DNA of 63,663 nt, counting the filler, from Salisapilia sapeloensis CBS 127946 (lineage: Eukaryota; Protista; Oomycota), in the NCBI GenBank assembly GCA_023334545.1. It is 5 parts of 5 records of this genome, joined end to end, with 100 filler letters (N's around TTAATTAATTAA, not from the genome) between each part and the next. Parts side by side here need not be neighbours in the genome. Positions count along the whole stretch, not along the records: positions 45,621 to 62,323 come from JAADVB010000350.1; 4 more parts are not named here. One strand, given 5' to 3'. Both the position numbers and the translations under genes were made by a program. Below the pieces are notes generated by a model. It worked only from the letters and a program-made list of their open reading frames with translations, did no database searches and had not been told where the DNA came from. Position 1 is the stretch's first letter; each line of letters begins with the position of its first letter. Shown piece by piece: positions 2,681 through 62,323 of the stretch.

Positions 2681-3523
2681 CTAATCCATGTCCAGGTCCG
2701 ATACAATATCTTTCCAATCTTCAGCCTCCTGCATCCGTTCCTTGAGAGCTTGAGAGAGCATGTCGATTGAATTTGCAGCAAGTGGCAAACGAACAGGAAG
2801 CTTAAGACCTTCGCAACGGCCAGTTTTAGTCAATATCTCAACAAGAACTTTTGCACCTTTCACTGGATCTCCCAAAGTACTAGAAGACTTTCTTCCGAGC
2901 TGTGAAAGACGCTCTTGGGTGGAGGGTGAATATCCATAAACAGTAGTAGTAGCAAGCATAACACGAGTGCCAAAGTTTGTGGCAAGCATGCCAAGGTCTA
3001 CTGTCGTCACTTCATTTCCAAGCGGCTCTACTTCGACTTTAAGACCCTGCATCACAGCTGTGATGGCTGCCTTGGAAGAGAAGTAGATTGAAATGCAAGA
3101 AAGTCCGACTATGGAGCCAACGGAACCGATAGTGCATATCACGCCAGACTTTTGTTCGCGCATATACGGTAGCACAACTCGCGTCAGAGCAATTATCCCA
3201 ATGACATTTGTCGTATACTGAGTGATTATATCTTCACAACTGTGCTCTTCCAGTAACCCAAGATGAGTGTATCCAGCGTTGTTCACGAGGTAGTCAATCC
3301 TACCAGTCTCTTTGATGACGCTGGCGACAGATTTTCTCAAAACCTTTTTAGGGGAGTTTACGTCGAGCTCCAATGCCGTAGCTCCTTGCTTCTTGAGCTC
3401 ATCAAGCGTCGAGCCGTTTCGAGCCGTTGCAACAACCTTGTCACCATGGGCGAGAGCAGCACGAGCAATTTCCTTGCCGAGACTCGAAGAACATCCAGTG
3501 ATGAGCCATACTTTCGGAAGCAT
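2681..3523 (-). CDS. Short-chain dehydrogenase/reductase (classical SDR), intronless
   Basis: From ATG 3523: VWLITGCSSSLG (Rossmann motif, second Gly is Ser), LVNNAG, catalytic YFSSK (YxxxK). The track's extra 101 N-terminal residues come from a non-ATG start. Confidence 0.85.
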   Translation of the reverse strand: MLPKVWLITGCSSSLGKEIARAALAHGDKVVATARNGSTLDELKKQGATALELDVNSPKKVLRKSVASVIKETGRIDYLVNNAGYTHLGLLEEHSCEDIITQYTTNVIGIIALTRVVLPYMREQKSGVICTIGSVGSIVGLSCISIYFSSKAAITAVMQGLKVEVEPLGNEVTTVDLGMLATNFGTRVMLATTTVYGYSPSTQERLSQLGRKSSSTLGDPVKGAKVLVEILTKTGRCEGLKLPVRLPLAANSIDMLSQALKERMQEAEDWKDIVSDLDMD

Positions 3524-4759
3524 ATTTCTTGGTAGTTGAGACTTGTAAGACTTGCGTCTAAGATGATAAATTCCAGAATAAAAAGAGTTTATGAAAATGG
3601 GAAGAAATGTTCGCCTCAATGAATTTGTATGGTTGACATCATCACAATCCTCTGGAGCATTAATGCATGCTATTGAGTAGTGGATGGTGGTTTGTCTGCG
3701 CATCGGACTGACTAAGGCTCGAATGGTCTGCTCCAAGTTTCCACGTTCTGCATAATCCTCACGTTTAATTGATCTACATTTGCATATACGAATTTCCGAC
3801 AATTGACGCATAATCGAAGTGGTCACCGGTGAGTGATGGTGGACCAGCTAATTAGATGTGTGTGCTTGATAGAGAATGCACTAAGAGCTAAAGGTACCAG
3901 ATGAACGGTTCATGATTGATACAGAAGATGCGAATGAAGTTCTGCTAGTGTTTGCCACAAAACTAATATTGCAATTAATTACGTTATAGAACGCTCGTTG
4001 CGCTTATAGCAGAGTACTTCCATAACAGCGGTAGAGGAGCAGCTACATGGACGTGATCTAAAACACCAGAAAACTGTTGCTTTCATGAGGGAAGCTAGGA
4101 ACGCGTTCATGAACAATATGGATCCTTTCGAAGCGACTATGGCGGATTTCGAGTGAAGATTTTTGTCACGAGGAGTTTGCTTAAGCCCAAAAGCTGTCCA
4201 ATTAAGCATCTTCTAAAGCCTCCTCTTGTTAAATGTTGTTTTAATGCAGGCATTTGGTCTATTAGTTAATAAACATATATCTAACTTTTATTTGGTTATA
4301 TCTATTATTTGCTTTCTTTGTTATAGCACGCACAGCCTTCAGAGAGAGATCTTCATAATAACTTATATGAAACAATTATTTAATGTCCTTCAGTAATTTA
4401 TGCTGGCCATAGGTGCTTACCGAGGCAAAATCTCAAAGAAAGCTACACTCTCCGGCCATACTATGATAGCGTTTTCTGAGTTCCAACGTAAATCTCCAAG
4501 CCTCTGTACTGCCTGCACATGAACATATCGAGCATCCGCAGTGAAGCACAACCAAAAGAATCAAATTCGAAAAGATAGACACGAAATTTGCGCTTAAAGG
4601 TGCGTCTATCTCATCCGAAATCACAACCACCTCTTCCACTGTGTACAACAGTGCAAGTAAAGCACTTGACCACCTTTCCATTAAACATACGCTGTACAGG
4701 CTACAATTTCATGAGCCTTCCTGTATACCTTTTCAACGGCAGAGTTACTACGTTTTACC

Positions 4760-4951
4760 ATGAACGAAGCAATCGACAACCATTTTAACTTCGCAGAGTA
4801 CGCAAGTCTAGAATCTCAGGCACATCACGATGACCAACCAACAGACACTTCCAAAATGAACACGTATGAGAAGTATCTCCATCTGGACAACACCAACGTC
4901 CTTTACAACTATCGATCCTACGATTACACGGACGTCATGTGTGGGATCTAG
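4760..4951 (+). CDS. Candidate 63-aa small protein, function unknown
   Basis: ATG-to-TAG ORF rich in C-ending codons (AAC, CAC, TAC, GAC) in otherwise AT-rich intergenic DNA. No recognisable domain. Confidence 0.35.
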   Translation: MNEAIDNHFNFAEYASLESQAHHDDQPTDTSKMNTYEKYLHLDNTNVLYNYRSYDYTDVMCGI

Positions 4952-5188
4952 TAACGTACCATGATTCATACCACTCGCGAGTACTCGATCTCGTATCATT
5001 TTCATGTTCATGACAACATATCTGCCTGTACTTCAACTTGCATTAAGATCATTTATATAAGCAAACGAACAAGTACCAGCATCTATTCAAAGTACAAGGC
5101 AAAAACTGCATCGACTTGTCTCCATTACTCGAAACGTTGACATCCTCCACGCCATCTTGAGCTTTCCAAATAGTATCTTAGTCCCATC

Positions 5189-45620: not shown

Positions 45621-47661
45621 GGACAGCTGGATGATGTGATATAATTATGTGACAAGATTCACTTATGTCATGGGTACAACTCGGCCGAGTAGCTTTATGG
45701 GAACCACCATCAATAAACAATGGTACCATAATGGATGGAGTCGAAAACACAAGCATCTATCTATTCTGTATGATTCTTTTCCAAACACTGGTGGTATTGC
45801 AAGTTTCATTTAAAATGTCATAGTTCGATCTGTGGAATCGATCCAGCCAAATAAATCCGATACATTTTTCAAGAGTTCTTTTAACCATGCCCCAACAACA
45901 GACACTCTTTTTAAATATCATGATTGGTGAAAAATACGTAAAAAGATTGAGTTTTGGCGAATGTTTGACTTGCATATCCTTGTATTTTGTAGCTTGATAA
46001 GCCACACTGACTGCAAATTACTGTACTTTTTTAATGAAAAAGCAAATCAAATAGAAACTTATCGTTGGATGAAATTCTAGAAAATGATCTATTTTAAACG
46101 AATGAGAGGATCGGATCGATTGTGAGCTCGATTTACCCACCAAGATGAAACTAGCCCGATTATGGAAATTTGGCCGAGAAGCACAATATATGCCATGAAT
46201 AAAGATACATTCACGGTGGTATACACTTGAATATGTGATGCATTATCATAAATTCGGCAGAGTAGCGAGTCTTGCTGCAACTTGTTTACCTGATAGCCAG
46301 AATTGAATCCAACACCAAAAATTGCACCTTGATTACAGAAGTTTAATCAGCGTAGTCCGACGCATAGCTCTTCGTCAAGGATGAACCCATGGCACTCCTA
46401 TGGGTGCAACTCATCTCATGTGTGAGTCGGTGGTTTGGCAACTGCCATCATAAATATGACTGTCGGATGTTTTGCGATCGGAGCACCAAACGTCGTGCGA
46501 TCCGTCGCATACTTAAAAGCGTCTTCTGAGTCTCGACTAGCGGAAGCAACTTTCCTGCTGGAGACAAGTGGGTGACATTAAACGTCTGCATCGCGATCTT
46601 AAAACCATCAAGTGATATGCAAGAATAATTTCGATAGCATGTTACAGATAGTTTCATGAGTATCAAGTCTTTTGTTGACCCATGGCGATCTCCCAGTTAA
46701 TGTCTATATGAGCGAAGTCCATATCAATATTGAACCTTTATAAATCTGTCTGCTTTTAATGAACACGCCTCGAGATACATCCAAGTCGATGGAAGCTGTG
46801 TTTGTGCTATCGTATATCAATACAAGTTGGCTACATCAACTTAGGTTCATGGATAGTTTCTGACAGGGAAAGAGGAACGTGATGGTTGATGCATGCGGGA
46901 ATCATGGTTATCGTAATCTCTAGGCAAAGAGTTCATGTATCGCCCAAGCTCATGTCAAGTGGTGTAGTAACTGTACCAGTGTCCTTATGGAAACCTGGAA
47001 GTTTAGTGAAGTAGTCAGATTGAAATTGATGCGGTATGGACTTGCAAATCATAGTGGTCTCTTTTCTGGATCGTATAAGCTTTCACTAGTTGGATATTAT
47101 CTGTATTCATAAACACCAAGCAGCTTGCTATAACTATAGAGATGTAGTGATGAATCATATTAAACAGGAGTGCAAAAGAATACTTTGCGCTTTTCAGGAA
47201 ACAGGTTCCGGTCCCTGTCATGGTCCGAAATGGTCAGTAGCTGTCAGATCGGTCTTGCAAATCGTCTACGCGCATCATGTCAATAATAGGTAGTGTGTCC
47301 AGGTAATTTCGGTGACACGAACCTATTCAGACTCTCGATAGCTTTGCGGTGCTCAATGCATGCTATAGCGTCGAATAATCAAAGCTGGTAAAAGAGAAGA
47401 GTCCGGTTTGCAGAAATGAATACTTGTGTGTAATCTGGTCGAGGAGATGGCTAAATCTTCATTTGCGATATGCACTAACTGTCTGGAAAACGGTAGACGA
47501 AAAGGTCTCGTCGCATCTGTGCGACGATGGGAAGAGCCTCCTTCAAAATTCCGACTTAGCATCGACGCGAGTCTCAGGTGGAGTTTCATTCCCGAATTTG
47601 CTTCTTCCAGCAACAGTCGAAAGCTAAGAATCAAGTACATCTCAACTCTTCGCTCTTCAAA

Positions 47662-48480
47662 ATGAAGAATCAACTCCAACAGACACTACTTGCTCTTGCT
47701 GTCTGCTTCATGAGCATGAATCTTGCTGCAGCAGACAACAGTCCCAAGACAATTCTAAGTTCAGCTGGTGACATCCAGATCGCGCCTGCCGTTGCTGCTG
47801 GCCTTGCCATCGTTCTCGGAACAATCGTGGCTGTCGCTGGATATAAACTACTCCGGCCGGTCATTTTTGTATGTGGATTCCTCGCTGGAGGTATCATCAC
47901 ATCCTTAATTATCGAAAAGGCTTTCGACTCGTATTCGTGGATGGATGTCGCTTCTTGGATTGGCTTTGTAGTTGGTGGCTTCATCATTGGCACGCTTGCG
48001 GCTGTGTTATACCCTGTCGGTGTCTTCATCGTCGGAATGGTCGGCGGAATCATTCTTGCCTTCATGTTGAACTCATCATTTGGCTACCTCATCTACCCTT
48101 CGCATCCGGACGTCATTTTAATCATCTTTATCGTTGTACTCGCAGTCCTTGGTGGTATCCTGACACTGTTTTTGGAGAAACCGATTCTCATCGTGGCGAC
48201 CAGCTGGATTGGAGCCTCGGCGTTAGTGTGGGGCATCGGATACTTTGCTGGAGACTACCCGAGTGGATCTAATATCAAGCACTATTACCGCGAAGCTAGG
48301 GATGGCAATTTCCACTACCACATTCCGGATGCGTGGTGGGCTTACTTGGCTGCTACAGTTGTCGCCTTCGCGTTAGCCATGTTCATTCAATTCCGTAAGA
48401 CTGCTCGCGAAGTTGAACATCGTCGTGCACGCGCTCCTCGTGAAGAGAATGACTTCACTGAGAATGTATCGCCGGCATAA
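47662..48480 (+). CDS. TMEM198/DUF4203-family multi-pass membrane protein
   Basis: Signal peptide and ~7 Gly-rich TM segments. GYKLLRPVIFVCGFLAG and EKPILIVATSWIGA match the family pattern. Confidence 0.8.
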   Translation: MKNQLQQTLLALAVCFMSMNLAAADNSPKTILSSAGDIQIAPAVAAGLAIVLGTIVAVAGYKLLRPVIFVCGFLAGGIITSLIIEKAFDSYSWMDVASWIGFVVGGFIIGTLAAVLYPVGVFIVGMVGGIILAFMLNSSFGYLIYPSHPDVILIIFIVVLAVLGGILTLFLEKPILIVATSWIGASALVWGIGYFAGDYPSGSNIKHYYREARDGNFHYHIPDAWWAYLAATVVAFALAMFIQFRKTAREVEHRRARAPREENDFTENVSPA

Positions 48481-48656
48481 AGCCCAAGAAGGTCAACCGT
48501 AAGATCCATCCAGAGCCTCGAAACCACATCGAAAGTATTAGCAAACGACAGTAGCTTATATTCGATAGAAAAGGTTATGGAGAGAAAATAAGTTAATTTC
48601 AGAAGGAAAGTGTGCCCAAGCTACGTGAACTCGTCCCTCTTTTATCAAAATGGCAG

Positions 48657-49403
48657 CTACTTGCAGCTAGCTTTTACTTCTTCCGTGTCTCTTGATCGTT
48701 CAGTTTTAGCTGGCAATTTGATGACAATGCTTTCTTCTTTTCGACAATAAGAAAACTGCTTGACGAACTTCTTGGCTCTGTTGACATCGCCGTTCCACCC
48801 AGAAACATACTCATTCACTTTTTCCTCTGAGAAATCATATTGGAATTGTTCTACCCGCTCTATATCGTAGATGTGTACACGGACATTCTCATTCCCGTCT
48901 TCCAATGGCCGAATAAAGGAGGATACGATCACATACGAGCCACACGGCAGCCTCATACCTTCCTTCCGTAGTAACTGAGCTTTCTGAACAATAGCATTTG
49001 CTTCCTTCGTTTCTTCTGCATCAGAAGATGGTCGAATTGGAGTTGCAACTACAAAGTCTGCCCATTCAAAGTCAATTCGAACTGGTTCATAATTAAATGC
49101 AGGCTGCGTTCGAGTCTGGATGGACTTGCGTCGGTAGTCATACGCCATCGCCTTCTTTTTCACCACGATCTCATCTTTAGACAGATCATACTTATTCAAC
49201 TTGATGTGTTTTGGATCGTTGTGGATTTTATAAATTCCGTCGTCGAGATCTGCCCATGGTCGACTCTCGTGTTGAGCGTCGTATGCTTCTAACGTCTTGG
49301 CGTTCGCAGCGTCACGTTTCCGTGTCTCTGATTCGCTCACCTGGGTATTCGCCCCTTTTTCTTGTCTTGATGGCATATTTTGCATCGAAGTTTTTGCTTC
49401 CAT
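48657..49403 (-). CDS. Hypothetical protein (248 aa)
   Basis: ATG-to-stop ORF with normal coding composition, divergent from UTP6. No domain recognised. Confidence 0.65.
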   Translation of the reverse strand: MEAKTSMQNMPSRQEKGANTQVSESETRKRDAANAKTLEAYDAQHESRPWADLDDGIYKIHNDPKHIKLNKYDLSKDEIVVKKKAMAYDYRRKSIQTRTQPAFNYEPVRIDFEWADFVVATPIRPSSDAEETKEANAIVQKAQLLRKEGMRLPCGSYVIVSSFIRPLEDGNENVRVHIYDIERVEQFQYDFSEEKVNEYVSGWNGDVNRAKKFVKQFSYCRKEESIVIKLPAKTERSRDTEEVKASCK

Positions 49404-49671
49404 TACGGATGAACCTCACTACTTCTAGGATTGAGATCAAATGTATCTCTATTCAGTCCGACGTAGGAGTTTCATCATTGCATCCCTTGAAGATCGCAAC
49501 TTCAACTTGCGGTGGATAGGGCTACTATTCGTTCAAGTGCGAAGCATCCGAACCAATAAACGCGACATCACTCAATTGGGCACTTCGTCTACGACTCGAG
49601 GCTCTTTATCTTCACCTGTCTACTTGGTTTCGAACAACTTGTAGTTGCATTGCAAAGCCAATTGAACTAGG

Positions 49672-51677
49672 ATGGCGGACACGGTACAATTGATGATGGA
49701 ACGTATGGTTCCGGAGCTGGAAGAGCTCCAGAAGACGAACATCTTCACGCCGGTATGGCACATTTGTTATTTCACAAGTATAGAAAGCATATTGAAAGTA
49801 CTCTGTTGCTTGGATGATTCCAGGATGAGATTAGACAGATTGTGGACAAGCGAAGGAACTTTGAATACATGATGAAGCGCACACCACTGCGCATTATTGA
49901 TGCCCTTCGCTATATCGAATACGAGATCAATCTTGATGCTCTCCGTATCAAACGCAAGCAGCGTTTCGGTACGCCATCTACTCTGCATTGATTCTATGCA
50001 TGCATCCTCACTGTTTCTGTAGGTATTACCAAGTCCCAAGTCAGCGATGTTGCAGGCATTAAACGCATTCATAAGATTTTTGATCGTGTGTTGCAACGTC
50101 ATCGCGGCAATCTCAACCTTTGGCTGCAATATATTGCCTTTTGTAAAGCGCAAGGTAGCTCTAAGGTTCTCGCTGGTGTCTTCTCCAAAGCCCTGCAGTC
50201 GCTTCCTCGATCGCCTGAACTCTGGATTGAAGCTGCTTCATACGAGTTTTCAGAAAACCTCAATGTCAATTCCGCTCGTCTCCTCATGCAACGCGCTCTT
50301 CGGGTCAACAAACACAGTCAAAAGCTCTGGCTTGAATACTTCCGTCTCGAGCTCCTGTACATCCAAAAGCTGACCATTCGAAGAGAAGTGTTACAACTAG
50401 ATGAAAAAGAGGAAGAGCCTCAGAGTCTGGTCATGGACATGGACGACCTGCCAGGCGACCAGGCTGAGGACAGTGACTTTGTTCTTTCGACAAAGAAAAA
50501 AGCTCGTGATGCGGTCCTGAAAGGAGCCATTCCTCGTCTCATCTTTGAAGAAGCCATCTCGTCTATCCCGGAAGACGTCTCTTTCCGTCTCCAATTCGTT
50601 GACATTTGTGATCCTTTCGGCATTGAATGTGCCTCGGAGCTCTCTGAATCGATCCTACAGTCTTGCTTGCAAAGCTTCCCATCGAATGAGCTCGTGCTAC
50701 AGGTGTGGGCAGTGCGTCCGTTGATCGAGAATGACAATGAAGAAGGAGAGATGACTGTTTTGTCTCGATTCGAGCGGACCATCAAGTCAGTGGATAGTCT
50801 CTCGATACACGAGGCTGCTGCTAAGTGGCTTGTTCAGCGCTTGGCATCCGGAAACGCTTCGCACATGTTGAAATCAAATGCGAAATCAAAGTTGATGGAA
50901 CTGCTGCAAGCAGCCAGTGCCACGGACGTGTCTGGGCAGCAGACTGTCTACCTCGCATCTATCCTGTCCAAGTACCTCGATGTCGTCGTACGGACGGATG
51001 GAGTCAGCGAGGCACTGTCCTTTGTTCAAACACAACTAAAGCAGTCGACAGTGATGGCAAAGTCGGCAGATTGCTGGCTGCTATACGCTCAATTGACTGC
51101 ACGTAGCGTATCGCCTAATGATCGAAAGCAGGTGCTGTCGGTACTCGAGGAAGGTGTAAAGACGGTGGATGCTAGAGATAGATTCAAAGTATGGAGAAAG
51201 CTACTAGAACTGACGTCGTCTTCGCCGTCGGAAGGTATTAGTAAGGTGGATTCAATGTTCCAGGCTGCCATGCAAGAGTTAGAGCGTGGATCGGAAGGAT
51301 GGAATGAGATTCGTGCGATGTACCTAACGTGGTACTCGACGGTCTATCCGCTCGTGGACGTTCGAAAGTGTTATGTCAAGTTTATGCAGACGACGCAATT
51401 GCTACCGACGGACGCGACGTTTGGATTTTTAAAGCAGTGCATTGAGATGGAACAAGCTGTGGTACGAAAGGAGGATGTGGATGTACCTGCCGTTCGCAAG
51501 TTGTTTGAAAAGCTTGTGGACTTGTTCGGAGATGCGCAAGAGGATGTCTGGATTGACTATCTGCAGTTCTATCGATCGATGAACATGTTCCGAGAGGCCA
51601 CGAGTATCTACCAACGAGCTCGACGGGTATGGAAGAACTCGGTTCGCATTGCCGACTTCTCTCTAGCAACCAAGTAG
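49672..51677 (+). CDS. UTP6: U3 snoRNA-associated protein 6 (HAT repeats); 3 exons
   Basis: MADTVQLMMERMVPELEEL N-terminus, YIEYEINLDALR, HAT repeats (LWLQYIAF, LWIEAASYE, LWLEYFRLEL). Confidence 0.9.
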
Positions 51678-51851
51678 GATAGATAAGAAAATCAATTTCT
51701 GCTTTCATACTTTTTTTCAGGAATGAAAGGACTAGCTTTAATGAGTACGAGTACGCTTGGTTGACATAGTATTGTTTTGCTTCATTATCTCTTAGAAGCT
51801 ATCTGTACTAGTGAAAAATTGTGGACTGGGGTGTGACCGACTACTGTGCTT

Positions 51852-52064
51852 CTATCTCGCTTCGAATTGAATGAGTCGTTTCGTGCGTGCCTTGTACATG
51901 ATTCGGTAGCCGCAGGCACGGCAACGGATCGGATCACGCGCCGATAAATAGTTGACGATGCCGCAGTCTCCGCAAATGTACTTGATTTCTGGGTCCTTGA
52001 CGGCATCCCCCATTGCAGGGTCGCTCGTCGACATGCCAGGCGCTGGGGTCGCTCCTCCGTCCAT
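51852..52064 (-). CDS. RPB12: RNA polymerase I/II/III common subunit RPABC4 (RPB12)
   Basis: YICGDCG...[23 protein letters not shown]. Confidence 0.95.
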
Positions 52065-52330
52065 CGTTTTCTTGCGAGGAAAAGTTGCAAATATGGCTTC
52101 ACGCGATAAATTTCAAAGACGCTATTTGTATTTCCTTACGCTAAATATACTTACTATGACAAAGTATAAAGTGTATCGCTAGGATGAAAACTAGTAATTT
52201 ATATGCTTGTCGAGTAAACTACGGACACAAACTTGGACACAACGGAATAAAATCGCTGGCTGACAAGCGAAGCAGTCGATTGACTCCATTGACGTTGCAT
52301 ACTTGCTTCTTTTCACACTCCAGCAGCAAG

Positions 52331-53933
52331 ATGAGCATGGCAGAGCCCCAGATGCCCACAATGTAAACCAGACTCCATTCATAGTTTCTTTCATCAACCT
52401 CGTATCGTCTTGTGCTGACATGGCTACACTTTCTATCCTAGTCTCTGTTGCATGTGCGCAACGCCCATCGAGGCCAATGCCGCGAATATGTGTGCTCCGT
52501 GCCTCCGCAACCAAGTAGACATTACAGAGGGCATCACTAAGGAAATTACGATCCACCAATGTCGTGGATGTCTCCGTTGGCATCGACCACCATGGGTGGC
52601 GGCTGAGCTCGAGTCTCGAGAGCTCCTCGCTCTGTGCTTGAAGAAGATTCCTAATCTTAAGGGCGTTAAGCTAGTCGACGCCAACTGGATCTGGACAGAG
52701 CCTCACAGCAAGCGACTCCAGTTGAAACTCACTGTTCAGAAAGAAGTGATGACGCAGATGATCCTGCAGCAGTCCTTCGTCGTCACGTTCATCGTCCGTA
52801 ACGAGCAGTGTGAGGACTGTCAGGCTAGTTTTGCCAACCAAGCATGGCGTGCTGTCGTCCAAGTGCGTCAGCGTGTCGATCACAAGCGTACCTTTTACTT
52901 CCTCGAGCAGCTCATTCTCAAGCACAAAGCTCATGAGAAGACGACGAGTATTGAATCTCATCCGGACGGCATCGATTTCTTCTTCTCTGAACGTAGTCAT
53001 GCCATTCGTTTCGTCGACTTCTTACGTGAATGTGTGCCAGTAAAGGTCAAAACGGCTAAGAAACTCGTGTCGGCAGATAATCATAGCAATACGCACAACT
53101 ATAAGTTCACGTACGCTGCGGAGATTGCGCCCATTTGTAAAGACGATCTCGTGGCACTTCCCCTCAAGCTTGCGAGAAACCTCGGTAACATCTCGACTTT
53201 GTGTCTCGTCCAGTCGGTCGGGTCGACTATTCGTGTCTTGGATCCGACGACCACCCAGATCGCTGACATTGACAGTGATAAGTACTGGCGATACCCTTTC
53301 ACGGCTCTTCGATCGATGAAGCAACTGCAGTCGTTCACGGTCTTGGATTCGAATCCGATGTCCATTCCGATCGGAGGAGGCCGACCTGTGCGTACTAATC
53401 GCAAGACGAGATTGGGCGAGATGGATGTCGTTCGTGACAAGGACTTTGGTGTCAACGACACTCGTTTCTCGACGATTAGCCACCTCGGTATGCTGCTCAA
53501 GTCGGGCGATAGCGCGTTAGGATACGACTTGACGAGTGCTGTGGTGAATGAAGCGGACTTGGAACCTCTACGACAGGAAGGACGAGACATGCCAGACGTT
53601 GTGCTAGTGAAGAAGCACTATCCGGACCGTATGAGGAAACGGAATTGGAAGCTGAAGCAGATGGAAGGTGTGGAAGAGTACGAAGGCAATGGCAAGAGGG
53701 ACTTGAACAAGGATGAGATGGACTACGAGAACTTCTTGGACGAAGTCGAGGAGGATCAGGAGATGCGTGCGCAGATTAATGTCTACAAGGACGACAAAGC
53801 TAATGCGATGGAAGGCGAGACTAGTATTCCGTTGCACGAGTTACTGGATGATCTCAAGGTCGAGGAACAAGCTGCTGTCTTGAATCCGGCGGAAGCGGAG
53901 CAGATGCCGGCGTGGGAACTTGAAGAGCTGTAG
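52331..53933 (+). CDS. NMD3: 60S ribosomal export adaptor NMD3; 2 exons
   Basis: Exon 1 MSMAEPQMPT spliced to ILCCMCATPIEANAANMCAPC. WIWTEPHSKR, AVVQVRQRVDHKRTFYFLEQLILKH. Confidence 0.95.
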
Positions 53934-54001
53934 ATATGTTTGCAACAGAAAAAGCTTTTACTTTTTGTTTCCTTCGAATTTACTTTTCTTTCGTATCGAA
54001 T

Positions 54002-55874
54002 CTAAGTGGGCTTCGGGATCGTCCAGTCCTGCGGGACAGGACCGACGTCGTTAATAACCTCACGGTGGCATGACCAGACCATACGGATGGCTTCGATCGT
54101 ACCAATACCGCCGGCACGCGGGTCACCTGCCGGTCCGAACCAGTGGTTCTGAGGAGCACCAGTGGTACGGGCGCGGATACCGGCGTACGACGTGCCGTTG
54201 ACAGAGTTCGCGATGATGTGCTGCGTGAACTCCGGGTCGTTCGACACGACGGCGGCGGTCAAGTGGGCGTCCATCTTTTCCAAAAAGTTCAGAATGTCCT
54301 GCACCTGACTGTCGTCGTACTCGGTGATCACTTGGAACGGACCGAAGATCTCGGTCGTGACAAGTTCAAAGTTCTCCGGCTTGATGAGTTCCTTCATCGG
54401 GACGAAGACGGCAGTGGGCTCAATGGCACCGTACTGCTCCGGCACCTTATGGTCCTTGAGCTCCTTACCACCAAAGGCAATGCGAGCGCCAGGGAGAGCC
54501 AACAGGTTGTCACGGTGCTCGAGCATGCGCTTCGTCGAGACTGTGAGGACAGGTCCGATGGTCAAGTCCTCCATCGAGCGACGGGAAGCGAGTTCAGCCA
54601 GTTTCTTCTCAATACCAGCCTCGGTCCAGTTCTTGTGCATGAACAGAATGGACTCGGCGGAGCACTTTTGACCAGAGCAAGCGTACGCGTCCTGGTCGCA
54701 CGTGTAAGCGACGTAGTCAAAGTCTGAGACATCCGGACCAAGGATCTTCCAGTCGAAACCAGCGTCCTCAACCTTGATGCGTCCTTGCAAGTCCTTGGCG
54801 AGCTTTTCGGCGACAGTGGAAGAGCCCGTGAAGAGCGTGTTGCGTGGGTTCACTTGCATCAGCAAGTCGTTCATGACCGGACCGTCCGAGTGGATGAAGT
54901 CGACGTCTTCCATGGGCATGCCACAGTGGTGGAGCATGCGCAAGGTTTCGTTCATGACGATCGAGACCTTGGAGTCAACCTTCAACAGCACCTTGTTGCC
55001 CATGTAGAGAGCGCCCATGAGCTGCAGCACCGGGATCTCGAACGGGAAGTTGAACGGCGTGATAAGGGAGACGGGACCGTACGGCCAGCGGTGGCCGTGG
55101 CTCGTCTGACCAGTGTGGTCACCAGGCACACCAAACGAGCGCGCGAGGAAACGGACCTGGTCACCCGAAAAGTTCTCAAGGAACTGACGAGAAATCCTCA
55201 CTTCGGCCATTGCCTGCGTGTAGCTCTTGGGAGACACACGCTGGACGAGACGGGCAAAGTAGTCGGCGACCTCCGGGTCACGGAGCATGGCAGCAGCCTT
55301 CGCGGAAACCTCACCATACAGCAAGTAACTACAATAGTATATCGTTTAGTAAGTATCTGCTGTTCGCATGTAGACGAAAGAGTCCTGCCACGTTGCATCG
55401 TGTATATAAAAGATACATGATGTGGTAGCAGTTGATAAGAAGATGTGGCTCTACAATTACTTGGAAATGTGCAAGTGATAACGTACCGTTCAGGGTTTTT
55501 GTACGGGTTGTGGAGACCGTGCTTGGGGCAGCTCGTCATGCTTTCGACGAACGGCTCAAGATCGGACGTCTGGGTCAGCGGAAGGTTGATGAATCCTTCG
55601 CCGTTCATCGGGTCCGGGATGACCTCCGTCTTGCTGGCCTTCTTCCATTCACCCTTGACTGTGCATCGGATACAACAATAAGAATTGGCATGTATGAATG
55701 AAAAGTTGCAAAGGAAACTTTACCAAGGTTGTATCCTTCGGCAGGATTTTGGCCATTCATGCCATTGGGATCGACCGTCGCCCACGACAGGGACGACATG
55801 GAACGGGCAGACGCATTGAGTGCTTGCGCGCGCTTCGCGAAGGTCGCGATGCGTGCAGAGCTTTGGCGCAACAT
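54002..55874 (-). CDS. ALDH12A1: Mitochondrial delta-1-pyrroline-5-carboxylate dehydrogenase (plant/stramenopile ALDH12 type); multi-exon
   Basis: Presequence MLRQSSARIATFAKR, RWPYGPVSLITPFNFPFEIPVLQ, EDAGFDWKILGPD, AYACSGQKCSA, NGTSYAGIRARTTGAPQNHWFGP. Confidence 0.92.
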
Positions 55875-56290
55875 GAGACTAGAACGAATGGATCGACGTG
55901 TGTTTCTGACCGCAAAACTCGAAATGAAAAAATTTTGAAGATCAGGTAGTGATACCACCTCGTACAGTTCCATTGGTTTCTACCTGTTTATGGCTTATTA
56001 AGGGGTTTTGGTAGGCGTAAAGGGGTTTTTGAAGATTGTAAACGACAGTTGTATCGAGGATGACAATGTTGAAGGTGTGCCAGCATCGAAAGACGTGTCC
56101 AAGGATCGACCAGGTGGAAAAGTAGCTACGGCCCGATAGAGGCACACCTCCCATTGATACGTCCGGTTCCAATGGAGCGGCTGCCGTCATTGTGCAAACA
56201 TGGATGGCTGGGAGCGACAGGAATACAGCTCTAATCATCATGTGTATACTTTAGTTTACTTACATCTGTCTACCGCCACCGGCAAACGTT

Positions 56291-56476
56291 TTAATCTTTC
56301 TTGTCTTCTTCTTGGCGTGGCGTGCCAGACTTGACGGCAGCTTCTGCTACCTCGGGTGGGATGCTCGGGATGGCAAAGCGTCGACCGACTGCACCTTTAC
56401 GAGCAAGTTCTTTTCGATCGTCCTGATTGCTTGAGCCTGTCGTTGACTTGGTGCTATTCTTATCTCCACTTTCCAT
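56291..56476 (-). CDS. Candidate 61-aa small protein
   Basis: ATG ORF with hydrophilic, coding-like composition, followed by a GTAAGT donor-like site. No domain. Confidence 0.3.
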   Translation of the reverse strand: MESGDKNSTKSTTGSSNQDDRKELARKGAVGRRFAIPSIPPEVAEAAVKSGTPRQEEDKKD

Positions 56477-56795
56477 CTCTTGGCTTCGCGTGCTAAATTT
56501 GAAGTCGAGAATCCTTAAAGGTTGCGAATAGCTACTCGAGATCTAGGCAGCGCGCAACGGTTTTTCGATTATGACTAGCGTGCGCAGTCTTGGCTTCGAT
56601 GATCAACCTTATCCGTCGTCGTCCAGTTGATGGCGAAACGTAGTGACTGCTCACGTACCTCTGAGTATTCAGGTGTCAACGTCGCGAAACGCATTCATGC
56701 ATAAAACAATGTCGCTAGATTACTTCTCAATAGAAATCAAAGTTTCCACGTTTGCCTAGATACAGTCCGGTCATGTACGATTCTTTATTTCAAAT

Positions 56796-58440
56796 TTATG
56801 CTTGATGAACGACTTGGACGACGCCGTGTTGCGTACGCTCCGCAACTTTGTCGAGTTTCTGCTGTTGCTCATCGTCCCACGCAATCGACACGCGCGGGTC
56901 ATTCTTTGTTAACCGAAGTTTATGCAGCTCTTTCAGCTCTGTCGTGTCACCGCCCAAAATCAGGACCAAACAGCTTTTCGGTGGTAGATGATCTGTTATG
57001 GTCTTGGCATGTGCTTGAATCTCACTTCGAGACGCACCGCGGAATCTTGCCCATGTGAAATGAGGTGGTAGCCCAGACTCGAGCTGTCCTACCACCGTCT
57101 TCGCGATTTGTGCCGGGTCTTCCTGAATGACAGTTGATGCAACGCAACTGCCTGCGCCACTCGTGATCGACCGACAAGAGCGTGCGGCATCTACAATTAA
57201 TGCAGTCTTCTTCTTTCTACCTAACTCACGAAGAACATTCTTGTTCTGTGGTGTTTTCTCTACCTGCGGAAACGATGGTCCTTTCTTCACTTTGAGCTGG
57301 AGGAGATGCAGTGCCGCAAGAGCGTCTTCTTTACTATCATGCCCATTCTCACTGTCCTGAATCGTTTGGTTCAAATACGTTTTTGTTAGCACCCTCAATG
57401 CCGTTCGAAACGGTGGACCTTTCGGATGAGGATACAAAGCACAGGTGTCGACGACACGTCGATGTATCACTTTCATCGCGACGAGATCATTTTCAATCGA
57501 GTGTCCGACTAGAATCGCACTGGATGGTACAAGTGTCGCGATTTTATCGTGAACATCAGATAAACGTGTACTTGTATCCTCCATGATCTCTCTCGTGACA
57601 CCTGAGAAGCGAGTGCAGTAGTCGACGATTGGATTTAAAGGTCGAACGAATTCATCCAACAAGACTTTTTCATCCGAGTCGACGAGTGTGACACGAGTGA
57701 GTTCGCGGCCTTTAGTCGTAATACACATTTCACAATCCACAGCGATGATCTGGTTAGCTGGTGCATTCTCCACTGGCTTTGTGAACATATATCCTTCCTT
57801 CTTCGCAGCTTCTTCAGACGTTGGTAGACTAGACAAATGCTGGTCGAATTCTTCATCGCTGAGGATGTAGAACTCGACGCCCACTTGACCATCTCCATGT
57901 GACGATTTGAACTTTTTAATCTGCTTTTTGAGCGCTTTCTTAGCTGCTTTCTTTTCAGTATCGAGCTCTTCCTTGGTAATTGGAATACGAAGTAAAGTGG
58001 CATCACAACGGGGGATGCTGTCATCGCTTGATAGTTTTGTTTGGAATGTATAGCCAGTGATTGTGTCGATTGATGCGATGTCACTCGTAGCGTCTTGTGT
58101 AGAGTTTGATGGACGGAGGTCAGGTACATCTTCACAGACGAGCAAAACAGCATACTTCAAGTCGGGTGTGGAGTCATGCAATAGCGCATCGGTCAGTGCA
58201 TCTCGAATATCCTATCGTATGCATATCGAATGCATAAAGTTAGATAAGATTGATACATTTGCATGCTGCGATCGATGTGAATAGCTAGTATACCGGTAAA
58301 GGCGTCATTTTTTGCTTTTCTGCAACAAGGTCTTCCATGGATCCTTTAAAAGAAGTATCACTGGGTTCCTCATTGGCTTTACGCTTCGCTTTACGCAACG
58401 AGCCCGTTGTAGCGGCAGTTAAAAAGAACGGTGCAGCCAT
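56796..58440 (-). CDS. DEDDh RNA exonuclease (REX1/REXO5-like); 2 exons
   Basis: [36 protein letters not shown]. Upstream exon MAAPFF...MTPLP joined via GTATAC...GATAG. Confidence 0.88.
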
Positions 58441-59856
58441 CTTATGCTCGTCCAGCGATTTCTGTCCAAACTTCGTGACTAGCATACCTTTTCAACCAAT
58501 CATATATCGTTCATATGATTTTTAGCCAATATATATGCGGAGACCTATCCTAGCGAATACAACTGGAAATGACGATAAACACGTAAGTCGATCTGTGGTT
58601 TCGAGACCTCTTGCATTGCGTTTTAGATGCATGGAAGAGGAGGAGGATTGGAGATTTGTAGCACGGTCACCAACGGTTAGGCGAGCTGTTGTTTGGAGCC
58701 TTAATACCAACGTCTGTCAGAATCTTGATGGGGAGTATCGAGGCACTACCTCCTCGTTGTAAGGGCGGACGTACATTAACAAGAGTGTTTCGATATGACG
58801 CTAGCTTTGATTGCTAGTGTTCGTAATGGAATGCATTTGGCTATTTGCAGGCGTCTTCGGCGAAGCGCTTCCGTTGTGCGCAAAGGCAGCCAAGATATTA
58901 GCTTTCATATCTTGGGTCCTAGATTCAAGATAGGGAGCATGGGTTTCTATTATTTCTTTCTCCAGTGACCGCATGTGCTCTCATCTTTTAATTCTCCGTT
59001 CTTCTCGTGACTGTGGATATTATGAGACGTATAAATCTTTAGTAATCCGATCCAGTACATGTATATTGCCCGATACGAATAGATGAAGTAGCTATTCAAC
59101 TTGTTTTGTTTTTCGCGCTAGTACTCTATGTCGTGTTAAGCAGGATCAATGTAGAGCAGCGTGTAGGAATTACGTGCAATTGATTTCTGTTCATGTGTCT
59201 ACTGATACAGAGTGCACTTGGCCTTGTACGTGTTAGCTCTAGTAGGTTTCCTATGAAGAGATGCTCATTAATGTAGTAAGGAAACATGGAAGCGATCAGT
59301 TTGTACTTCATTCTAAGAATAAGACTGATACGTAGGTCATCCAAAGCGTACTTTGTTCGCTTTGCTTCTTGACTTCCAAATCTATGAAAGTAGATACTTG
59401 GACATGCTACACAGGATTTTTATTGCAACCACATATCAGAGAATCTAGACATTGTGTAATGGCTAGCTAATGCTCGGTTTGTCATTCTTACAAAATGGGT
59501 CACCCATCACAATCATCAATCGACTTGACTTATTTAGTGATAAGACTGTGTACAAACATATTCATCGCAAGCATTGGACCTTGGTATGCTCCAAGGATAG
59601 TATTGATATCGCATTTCGAAGTAGCATTCAAATGACATTCAAGAACTCCTTTGACATGAAAAGTAGCTTATATACTCGGTACTGCTTCAGTCTTAATAGT
59701 ATCGACTACTAAGTCAGACTGTAAACTACAAATACAAACAAATATAAGAGAAAGACGATTGATACTGCTAAGTAGAAGCAAATGTATTACTATGTCGTAC
59801 TTAGCCTATGTTGTCGTTGCTACCATTCACGACAAAAAAGTTGGGTAGTGAAACGC

Positions 59857-61104
59857 CTACTGTTTGTTCTGGTACCATTCCACCACCTTTGGATGCTCAT
59901 CCACTTGCTTAAAAATCTGGAAGACCTTGGGACAGTTCTCGTGCATCGTCATCGGTGCATCTTTCAAGAAACCGCAAATCATAAACTTGATGCAGCCGTA
60001 GATTGCCAAATCAGCGGTAGTGAGATGATCTGAAACCGCGAACTGCGTACCCCAGTGAGCAATACGATTGTCAAGTAGCTTCAGCGTCTTTGCCCAAACG
60101 TCCGACAAGGATTCTGACGAACTTTTGCGTTCGAAGTGAAAGTCTTCAATCGCTTCGTCGATTTCGTCCACGCGGAACTGGATGACAGGCTCGTTTTCCG
60201 GGTACAAGCCAGCAAGCATGCCAGCATAGTTGAGAAGAGCATTGGCTTGACACATGACATCGTCATTCACTTCCAACACTGGAAGCTGCTGATACGGGAA
60301 GGTTGGCTTCATCTGTGGCCAATCGGCCGGGTCGACACGAACGTCTTCAAACGGAATACCACCGATCGCAAGCGTCAAGCGAATGGACTCGACTCTACCA
60401 GGAATGCCAAAGTACGTCAACTTGAGCTTTGGGTATTCCGAGCGCTGGACAGCGTTCCACTGAGTGACCTTGGGATGGCTCGCGACCTTAGCGTGAGCAC
60501 GCTCAAAGGAATCAAATCCTTCCACAATCGTTGATGGTATACCATCCAAGTGTCCACTCGTAAGGATGCTATGTAGACTGTAAAGCATCAGCTCATGGAT
60601 AAAGACTTGTTCCGTCTGGAAGATCTCGAGCTTGTACATCTTGTGCAGACGTTTGTCCATCAAGGAGAGCTGCGATGGAAACTGTTCTTTTGCAAGCTCT
60701 TGAAGCTTCTCTTTCTTCTTCTCCGGGTCGGACTCGGTCATGGCTGGCTTCAAGCTGTTCGTAGCATCGTTCACGGCATTCATAATCTCCGTCACGAGGA
60801 TCGAGGCAAGCGGGTTATTGACTGGGTAGAGTCCACCAAGTCGTCCGATGTACTTGAGCTGTGCGGCGGATTGACCATAGACTTGGCCATCGACCTCGAG
60901 AATCGGCAGCTGACCAAAAGGTAGACTGTTCTTCTGCGCAGCAAACTCTTCAGGCGAAATACGGTTGTCCTCAAATGGAATGCCAGCGATGTGCATCGCT
61001 AGACGAATGGGCTCGGCACGTCCAGCTACATTGAAGTAGGTGAGTTTGATGGAGGGATACGTGGACATCTTGGCAAGTCGGAGAGCTTGAGCAGTACGAA
61101 GCAT
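59857..61104 (-). CDS. Tandem two-domain glutathione S-transferase (sigma-like)
   Basis: Two GST units: KLTYFNVAGRAEPIR...FGQLPILEVDG...QSAA and KLTYFGIPGRVESIR...YQQLPVLEVND...QANA. Short basic N-terminal extension MLRTAQALRLAK. Confidence 0.9.
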   Translation of the reverse strand: MLRTAQALRLAKMSTYPSIKLTYFNVAGRAEPIRLAMHIAGIPFEDNRISPEEFAAQKNSLPFGQLPILEVDGQVYGQSAAQLKYIGRLGGLYPVNNPLASILVTEIMNAVNDATNSLKPAMTESDPEKKKEKLQELAKEQFPSQLSLMDKRLHKMYKLEIFQTEQVFIHELMLYSLHSILTSGHLDGIPSTIVEGFDSFERAHAKVASHPKVTQWNAVQRSEYPKLKLTYFGIPGRVESIRLTLAIGGIPFEDVRVDPADWPQMKPTFPYQQLPVLEVNDDVMCQANALLNYAGMLAGLYPENEPVIQFRVDEIDEAIEDFHFERKSSSESLSDVWAKTLKLLDNRIAHWGTQFAVSDHLTTADLAIYGCIKFMICGFLKDAPMTMHENCPKVFQIFKQVDEHPKVVEWYQNKQ

Positions 61105-61815
61105 AATCGAAAATGAAGACAGAGAGGAATTGATACAGCTACGTTGTTTTTGTTGCAGAGATTTCGCAATACAGTAGTCTTGAAGCATAGTCTATGTCGA
61201 CCTTTGCAGCCTACCCCAAATAGGTTCAATCATTTCGAAGAATTATGGTACAGCTACCCATAAACACTCAAGATCTTAATGACTCATGTACAAAGTATAC
61301 CTTGTTCAAGTGAAATCCTTGATCTGATCTCGGGTTTCCATAGTCAAAAAGCAACTGTCAGTTTAGGCATGGAAACTTGGACGAAATGTTGGCTATGACA
61401 CGTCGCTGAACCCTTGATACCTTCCTTTTCTGTGTTTCTACTTATTTGGCTTGAATGTAGCCGAAATGATTAGATACGTGGAGAAGACTGACTAGAAGCT
61501 CTTGACTGCAATGAATTCTTCAATTCTCTGTATTGCCCACATCACGAAAGTTTGTAGAGCTCATAGCTTACACTTGCGCATGCAACAAAAGAATTAGTCA
61601 ACCAGCCTTCAGTCTCATGCTATACGATGAAATGTTAGGTTTTGCAAATTGCAGATCAAACCTAGCTTCAGACTGCATATTACTTTAGTCTAAGTCCACT
61701 GCGCAAAATGAGTCAAGTATAGGCTCTTTTCCACTATCTCCACTAGTGCTGCACCGTCCGCTGTCTTTAGTCTATGCAAACAATATAAATAAATAATAAT
61801 ACATACCTCCGCATT

Positions 61816-61959
61816 GTCTATCAAATAGACTTGGACCTTTAAAACGATCTCCAAACCAAAGCCAGGTAATCGCCGAGCTTCATGGGCATGGCCTCATTTA
61901 AAACTGAGGCGTTATTGCTCATCACTTGCATCCACGTTTGGAACACCAAAGTGACGATG
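61816..61959 (-). ncRNA. Candidate Fanzor omegaRNA scaffold
   Basis: Four adjacent hairpins (61929-61959, 61891-61910, 61831-61854, 61816-61830) overlapping and following the 3' end of the Fanzor ORF. Position inferred from TnpB/Fanzor biology; no expression data. Confidence 0.45.
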
Positions 61960-62322
61960 AAGGATGTAGTGCTTGATGTTCTTGTGTAGGGTGTTCTTGC
62001 TTGCGTACACATCGCGATCGCCTTTAAATCCGCAAGATGGACATTGGAAACCTTTGCTTCCACCTAGACTCTAATTGATTTATCCACAAGCGGAGCAAGT
62101 CTTAGACGTGTATTCTTTGGTGACGACTTAAAGACATCCGCCAACACGCTTCATTTTGTATTTGATCATCATCTTAAACTGTTAGTGCGACAGCGCTTTA
62201 TTCGCACGCGCGGTTGGCGGCTGGATGTTGCGCTTGCGATATCTGGGCTTCGCTTCAGTCTTGGTTACTTCATTGCTCTTACCTTTCGTGTACTTCACTA
62301 CCATGTTGGAAGTATCGAAGGA
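61912..62322 (-). pseudogene. Fanzor2-like / TnpB-family RNA-guided nuclease, C-terminal fragment (5' part lost in the gap), 4 in-frame stops
   Basis: Frame from 62322: SFDTSNMVVK...RKRNIQPPTARANKALSH*QFKMMIKYKMKRVGGCL*VVTKEYTSKTCSACG*IN*SLGGSKGFQCPSCGFKGDRDVYASKNTL. Not in the ORF track. Confidence 0.85.
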
Positions 62323-62323
62323 A

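Follow-up and report, generated by a model that had tools for sequence, protein, structure and literature searches.

A probable decayed Fanzor2/pro-Fanzor-type TnpB gene beside host genes at a contig end of Salisapilia sapeloensis CBS 127946

The DNA analysed, hereafter the window, is a stretch of 63,663 nt from Salisapilia sapeloensis CBS 127946 (GCA_023334545.1), in which the 16.7-kb piece JAADVB010000350.1 occupies positions 45,621-62,323. This piece carries a host gene for a two-domain glutathione S-transferase (GST) on the minus strand (59857-61188), in which the Pfam domains GST_N and GST_C_3 were each found twice. TM7S3/TM198, a HAT-repeat UTP6-like protein, NMD3 and an aldehyde dehydrogenase, all of them ordinary eukaryotic proteins, are encoded in the same piece. 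The nearest Atlas cluster of the GST was a 435-aa double GST, mostly from Oomycota, which may point to an oomycete host group as a lead, not as proof. At the very end of the piece lies the feature studied here, the 3' remnant of a putative Fanzor2/pro-Fanzor-type TnpB gene (61915-62322, minus strand), which comprises 136 codons with four in-frame stops and is cut on its 5' side by the contig end.

Translation of the minus strand from 61909 to 62322 gave SFDTSNMVVKYTKGKSNEVTKTEAKPRYRKRNIQPPTARANKALSH-stop-QFKMMIKYKMKRVGGCL-stop-VVTKEYTSKTCSACG-stop-IN-stop-SLGGSKGFQCPSCGFKGDRDVYASKNTLHKNIKHYILHRHFGVPNVDASDEQ-stop. The four internal stops were TAA at 62184-62182, TAA at 62130-62128, TAA at 62082-62080 and TAG at 62073-62071, and the terminal TAA was located at 61914-61912. 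Stop 1 (62182-62184) falls in the S-H-[Y/F]-x-F column of the family and stop 2 (62128-62130) in the hydrophobic strand that precedes V-T-E-E-Y. A frame with four stops, broken by the contig end inside the gene, had been described in the original prediction; the frame was reproduced exactly on the minus strand from 62322 to 61912, and it is indeed cut at 62322/62323, where the piece ends and beyond which only N and linker follow. A tblastn search of the 16.7-kb piece revealed no further copy of the relic. Since residues 29-119 of the relic aligned gap-free to the family HMM, no frameshift needed to be assumed. The GC content (45.6%) and GC3 (52.9%) of the relic were both inside the host range. 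A variant genetic code that would rescue the frame was considered and rejected, as the neighbouring genes are long open reading frames without in-frame TAA or TAG.

An extra segment of about 19 Lys-rich residues (KYTKGKSNEVTKTEAKPRY; 62239-62295, minus strand) was observed in frame between F-D-T-S-N-M-V-V and R-K-R-N-I-Q, at a place where the relatives have just 4-5 residues. This segment could be either a lineage-specific loop or an insertion.

The order of motifs along the frame, F-D-T-S-N-M, the E-x-Y-T-S-K-T-C block, CxxC...CxxC and D-R-D, is that of the C-terminal part of TnpB/Fanzor, as originally proposed. The region of the ancestral (canonical) RuvC-II site, S-F-D-T-S-N-M-V, was placed at 62299-62322 (minus strand) by alignment to the relatives. 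It aligns with their L-P-x-F-E-T-x-x-M-V, for example H-F-E-T-S-N-M-V in P0061, and residue F2 of the relic sits in a column that is 91% Phe. The zinc ribbon CxxC...CxxC (62032-62097, minus strand) is formed by Cys76, Cys79, Cys94 and Cys97 and is interrupted by stops 3 (TAA 62082-62080) and 4 (TAG 62073-62071). All four of its Cys residues are kept, in columns that were 100% Cys in 247 relatives. Translation and column comparison showed that the RuvC-III D-R-D (62011-62019, minus strand) is also retained, with the Asn of D-R-D-x-N replaced by Tyr at 62007-62005. The motif [TS][TS]-x-x-C4...RD, which was defined for Fanzor/TnpB by Bao & Jurka 2013 (PMC3627910), was found in the relic as Y-T-S-K-T-C ... 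D-R-D between 62112 and 62011.

The shifted RuvC-II column, seven positions ahead of the first zinc-ribbon Cys, contained Glu in 130 of 131 and then in all 247 of 247 relatives. In the relic this column is occupied by Lys69 (AAA, 62116-62118, minus strand), so that the nearest relatives read V-T-E-E-Y-T-S-K-T-C and the relic V-T-K-E-Y-T-S-K-T-C, and the catalytic residue is lost. The block around the shifted Glu of Fanzor2/pro-Fanzor proteins, six residues before the zinc ribbon, is thus present in the relic and the Glu itself is absent. The Glu previously regarded as catalytic is Glu70 (GAA, 62113-62115, minus strand), which belongs to the variable column adjoining the catalytic one, where S, A, E, H or Y occurs among the relatives. 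Consequently, the statement that both visible catalytic residues survive held for the RuvC-III Asp of the retained D-R-D and failed for the Glu, whose invariant column holds Lys (62118-62116). The Lys in the Glu column is read here as a derived loss in a protein that belongs to the clade, rather than as the sign of another architecture.

Among the covered columns with at least 85% conservation, the relic keeps 20 of 26, and the six changes are L53I, E69K, N106Y, A108S, R109K and I111T. As judged from the sequence, decay of the relic is modest but decisive, with four stops present and an invariant catalytic residue gone. The four in-frame stops leave no functional open reading frame and, together with the change from Glu to Lys, indicate that this copy is dead as a nuclease.

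Relatives were collected with a family seeded by the degenerate DNA motif S-K-x-[YF]-x-C-x-x-C-G-x3-D-R-D, which yielded 12 loci in giant-virus contigs (L001-L012). The open reading frames of these loci were 35-45% identical to the relic over 80-97 residues. Two profile searches with the giant-virus sequences and the relic pieces as seeds returned 530 and 4046 family members. An HMM was then built from the C-terminal 220 residues of the collected relatives, and the stop-repaired peptide of the relic, with X placed at each stop, scored 97.5 bits against it. Among 2000 shuffled versions of this peptide the highest score was 9.2 bits, and a chance open reading frame was accordingly rejected. The TnpB/Fanzor match expected for the repaired peptide was thus obtained, and it was accompanied by a Pfam match of the last uninterrupted piece (51 aa, 61912-62067) to PF07282 (Cas12f1-like TNB / OrfB zinc ribbon) with an E value of 1.7e-5. 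The score of this match, for which Pfam was run on the last 51 aa alone, was 25.4 bits and just below the cut-off of 26.3; the relic covered positions 40-59 of 60.

The same 51-aa piece matched NCBIfam guided_TnpB at its C-terminal end (positions 365-389 of 389), and PF07282 was carried by 97 of the 100 ESM-Atlas clusters nearest to it. The best blastp matches showed about 50% identity over 85-88 aa, with up to 86 bits, and were to P0103, P0084 and P0075. A phmmer search of 1.84 billion representatives with the 51-aa piece gave no match at E <= 0.001, since this query was too short. Searching viral contigs with the same piece provided no confirmed relative, and a scan of metagenome contigs found no close relative, the best match being 61% over 31 aa. 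Exact look-ups of pieces of the GST, NMD3 and the relic returned no record of any of them.

By its sequence, the relic is a true TnpB/Fanzor homologue of the Fanzor2/pro-Fanzor (IS607-lineage) clade. TnpB proteins of the Fanzor2/pro-Fanzor type are RNA-guided RuvC endonucleases of IS607-lineage mobile elements and giant viruses. The best PDB match of the 51-aa piece was 9b0l, the mimivirus TnpB-like protein L79 (E 0.0027). P0103, the nearest full-length relative, matched L79 with 78.8 bits (E 3.4e-21) vs at most 44 bits (1e-5 to 1e-10) for TnpB/Cas12f, and no other Fanzor-named PDB chain was listed for it at E <= 0.001. The relatives carry L-D-P-G-V-R-T-F in RuvC-I (DPG) and E-x-Y-T-S-x-T-C ahead of the zinc ribbon. 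This combined signature defines Fanzors and their cyanobacterial pro-Fanzor ancestors according to Yoon et al. 2023 (10.1101/2023.08.09.552727), and the shifted-Glu feature was described as a rearranged RuvC site by Jiang et al. (PMC10530073). In a tree of the C-terminal region the relic was placed on a long branch without a supported clade. P0103, P0117 and P0043 were located among eukaryote-type or giant-virus-type genes. Proteins from giant-virus contexts and from brown algae, besides a Microcoleus IS607 TnpB, made up the nearest relatives, at about 50% identity. The Microcoleus protein P0075 was the nearest named bacterial relative, with 49% identity over 88 residues. The Fanzor2-like, IS607-lineage affinity originally suggested was borne out by L79 as the nearest structure and by a Resolvase-type TnpA lying beside the IS607 TnpB of Microcoleus.

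The Microcoleus IS607 element extends over 3442-5137 of its locus (L018, plus strand); its TnpA, with MerR/HTH_17 and Resolvase domains (3442-4059), overlaps the start of the TnpB gene of P0075 (4001-5137) by 59 nt. A TnpA partner was observed for this bacterial relative alone. At 49% identity, the Microcoleus pro-Fanzor was as near to the relic as any eukaryotic or viral protein found. The nearest giant-virus relative was an open reading frame on an 8.6-kb MAG contig (L004:3064-3576, plus strand), which encodes a 170-aa C-terminal TnpB-like half with 45% identity to the relic. As this open reading frame is without RuvC-I, it represents another truncated copy. Four proteins of Ectocarpus and Pylaiella annotated as "unnamed protein product" (P0169, P0170, P0182 and P0229; 370-568 aa) belonged to the same Fanzor2 subfamily as P0103 and were 55-60% identical to it. 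These brown-alga proteins may be encoded in integrated phaeovirus DNA.

L79 of Acanthamoeba polyphaga mimivirus (ApmFNuc/ApmFz2) is a Fanzor2 encoded in an IS607-type element. The relic shares its order of blocks, namely the old RuvC-II, E-x-Y-T-S-x-T-C, the L-G-x-S-K-x-[FY]-x-C ribbon and the D-R-D-x-N region; unlike L79, it is a fragment of about 135 visible residues with four stops and with Lys in place of the shifted Glu. Motifs of the E-Y-T-S-K-T-C and L-G-G-x-K-x-F-x-C-P-S-C-G type are likewise shared with the Microcoleus pro-Fanzor P0075, from which the relic differs in being decayed and in lying in a eukaryotic genome beside eukaryotic genes. Canonical IS200/IS605 TnpB (ISDra2 TnpB, PDB 8exa/8h1j) and Cas12f belong to the same superfamily and have a split RuvC with an inserted PF07282 zinc ribbon. 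They are far more distant, however, as P0103 matched them at 1e-5 to 1e-10 in contrast to 3e-21 for L79. In canonical TnpB the RuvC-II Glu precedes the zinc ribbon by about 45-50 residues (10.1101/2023.08.09.552727, PMC10530073), whereas in the family of the relic it is located seven positions before the first Cys.

That Fanzors were already known from oomycetes, as the original prediction stated, is correct: Table 1 of Bao & Jurka 2013 (PMC3627910) contains Fanzor2 families from Phytophthora sojae, P. capsici and P. ramorum, and Fanzor1 was reported from Pythium and Albugo in the same study. In later surveys, the Fanzors detected in eukaryotes and viruses numbered in the thousands (PMC10530073). 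The Phytophthora Fanzor2 families represent the same gene class in the same organism group (PMC3627910). With the relic, a class known in oomycetes since 2013 gains a new member that is divergent and dead. The suggestion that its family may be new was not established; the relic is at most about 50% identical to the listed matches over the 85-90 residues that can be aligned, yet Fanzor2 families of Phytophthora were reported in 2013 (PMC3627910).

Linkage of the relic to the host genes was evaluated with contigs derived from sequencing runs. One DNA-run contig covered 60988-62021, from the interior of the GST gene to the D-R-D motif, with 0 differences from the window and a depth of 39.7, which is that of the unique flank. 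GST and relic are thus joined without mismatch by a single read-derived contig, as the proposed linkage demanded. The relic is physically linked to the GST, NMD3, UTP6-like and TM7S3 genes and consequently resides in a eukaryotic genome. Apart from the DNA run, sequence of the relic region occurred only in four RNA runs, likewise of this organism.

Contigs of different sequence were found over the same region. A second DNA contig over 61835-62021 had 21 differences and a depth of 77.5. Another contig, 1137 nt long and starting from 61992, had a depth of 105.7, showed 5 differences within 61992-62323 and extended 805 nt past 62323, where the piece ends. Its depth was about 2.7 times the 39.7 of the unique flank, and the contig depths together lay near 1x, 2x and 3x of about 38-40. 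These depth steps suggest three copies, contig depth not being a copy number in itself. Two unmatched flanks were detected among the copies, at 61748 and 61788. The flank at 61788 is an indel in an AT-rich run, where 20 of 29 bases match after a 1-nt shift, which leaves about 61748, a position 164 nt past the stop codon, as the true limit of homology. The unrelated sequence that follows directly past 61748 favours an insertion boundary.

According to these results, the relic belongs to a repeat of low copy number, of which the genome contains two or more further copies or variants; this explains why the contig breaks at this position. The guess that other copies exist was supported by the variant contigs, the two different flanks and the contig depth of about 2.7x. 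A segmental duplication, or divergent haplotypes with an indel at 61748, could mimic part of this picture of a repeat with a sharp end, given that a second, diverged copy of the GST is present.

The second GST copy was observed in the same DNA run as a mosaic of near-identical stretches (collapsed, about 70x) and stretches that were 87% identical (31 differences in 241 nt). The GST contig of the RNA run fitted this other copy and not the copy in the window, from which it had 83 differences over 1230 nt. Homology between the two GST copies ended at the ends of the coding sequence (59858 and 61080).

Transcripts similar to the relic were detected in the RNA data. An RNA-run contig of 1000 nt covered 61748-62323 with 37 differences and continued for 302 nt into another flank on one side and for 122 nt past 62323 on the other. 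RNA depth was zero in the unique stretch 61160-61669, indicating that the relic-like contig represents RNA and not DNA carry-over. In all four RNA runs, which came from two samples, a fraction of 0.40 of the words sampled from the relic region was recovered.

Taken together, the feature at 61915-62322 is very probably a decayed gene remnant, the 3' part of a TnpB gene of the Fanzor2/pro-Fanzor type, inserted next to genes of the host in an oomycete-like genome. When intact, the ancestral protein would have bound a guide RNA whose template is the gene's 3' terminus together with the right end of the element, and would have cut double-stranded DNA matching the guide next to a short motif; such cutting would help the element to persist. 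Three residues would have made up its split RuvC site: the Asp of RuvC-I, the shifted Glu, which lies six residues ahead of the zinc ribbon, and the Asp of RuvC-III. The present copy is incapable of such cutting, with its four stops, Lys in place of Glu and its 5' half outside the assembly. The end of homology between copies, about 164 nt past the stop, would coincide with the expected position of the right end of such an element. We also infer that the element was mobile and that it had an IS607-type partner.

The most serious alternative, which we nevertheless consider unlikely, is that the relic marks the edge of an endogenised giant-virus (NCLDV) fragment instead of a cellular IS607-like/Fanzor2 transposon, the gene having arrived with viral DNA and decayed in place. 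Many relatives do lie in giant-virus contigs (L001-L012) or in virus-like contexts with Evr1_Alr, RFC and collagen-like neighbours, the same subfamily includes proteins of Ectocarpus and Pylaiella, hosts known for integrated phaeoviruses, and Fanzor2 is enriched in viruses (PMC10530073). However, homology between the copies stops 164 nt past the stop codon and is directly followed by unique host sequence and the GST gene, viral genes are absent from the 16.7-kb piece, and the GC3 of the relic (0.53) is inside the host range. The viral and the transposon readings are not exclusive, as a virus may have delivered the element. Even less probable is contamination, in which the contig end would be prokaryotic or viral DNA wrongly joined to host sequence. 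In its favour, the relic lies at the very end of the contig and has a cyanobacterial protein as its closest named relative, but the identity to the cyanobacterial protein is only 49%. The independent contig over 60988-62021, free of mismatches and at the depth of the unique flank, and the presence of the sequence in runs of the same organism only, RNA libraries included, rule this explanation out for practical purposes.

It was also considered that the stops could be assembly or sequencing errors, or private to one copy, and that the locus or a sister would encode a working or domesticated protein. This possibility appears quite improbable, more so than a viral origin though less so than contamination. 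The collapsed 1137-nt contig differs from the window at 5 positions in 61992-62323, four RNA libraries contain a variant copy, and decay is modest, with 20 of 26 conserved columns kept. Set against this are four distinct stops, both TAA and TAG among them, the Lys in the Glu column, the Tyr in D-R-D-x-N and a standard code, as seen in neighbouring genes with long open reading frames free of in-frame TAA or TAG. Presence in an RNA contig does not show translation, and the contig in question runs 302 nt into an unrelated flank.

If the relic is a decayed Fanzor2/pro-Fanzor-type gene as proposed, it is one more decayed copy from an already known class of mobile RNA-guided nucleases and is of little importance as it stands. 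Its value for annotation is that the fragment should be masked as a transposon relic and not treated as a gene. Wider interest would come solely from an intact sister copy, which would be a compact eukaryotic RNA-guided nuclease of a divergent Fanzor2 branch. It is doubtful that an intact, transcribed sister persists, that is, a divergent Fanzor2 at most about 50% identical to the listed matches, with a guide RNA and perhaps an IS607-type serine recombinase. Were it present, an oomycete would harbour a transposon and RNA-guided nuclease that are still active. The candidates for such a copy are the variant detected in four RNA libraries and the 1137-nt contig that extends past the contig end.

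The 164-nt non-coding tail of the relic (61748-61911, minus strand), which is common to the other copies, is a candidate for the right end of the element and for an omegaRNA/reRNA scaffold. In intact elements the guide RNA is about 120-200 nt long and spans the gene's 3' terminus and the right end of the element. The tail had no Rfam match, and single-sequence folding gave an energy z of -0.2, thus no excess. No informative repeats were found in a repeat search around the tail, and its comparison with 98 related loci revealed no nucleotide similarity. Because no structure, no Rfam family and no similarity to the tails of relatives were found, a putative guide-RNA role of 61748-61911 is suggested by position only. 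A perfect 6-bp hairpin, GCCUCA-8 nt-UGAGGC, was observed directly after the stop codon (61890-61909, minus strand) and was present in the centroid fold.
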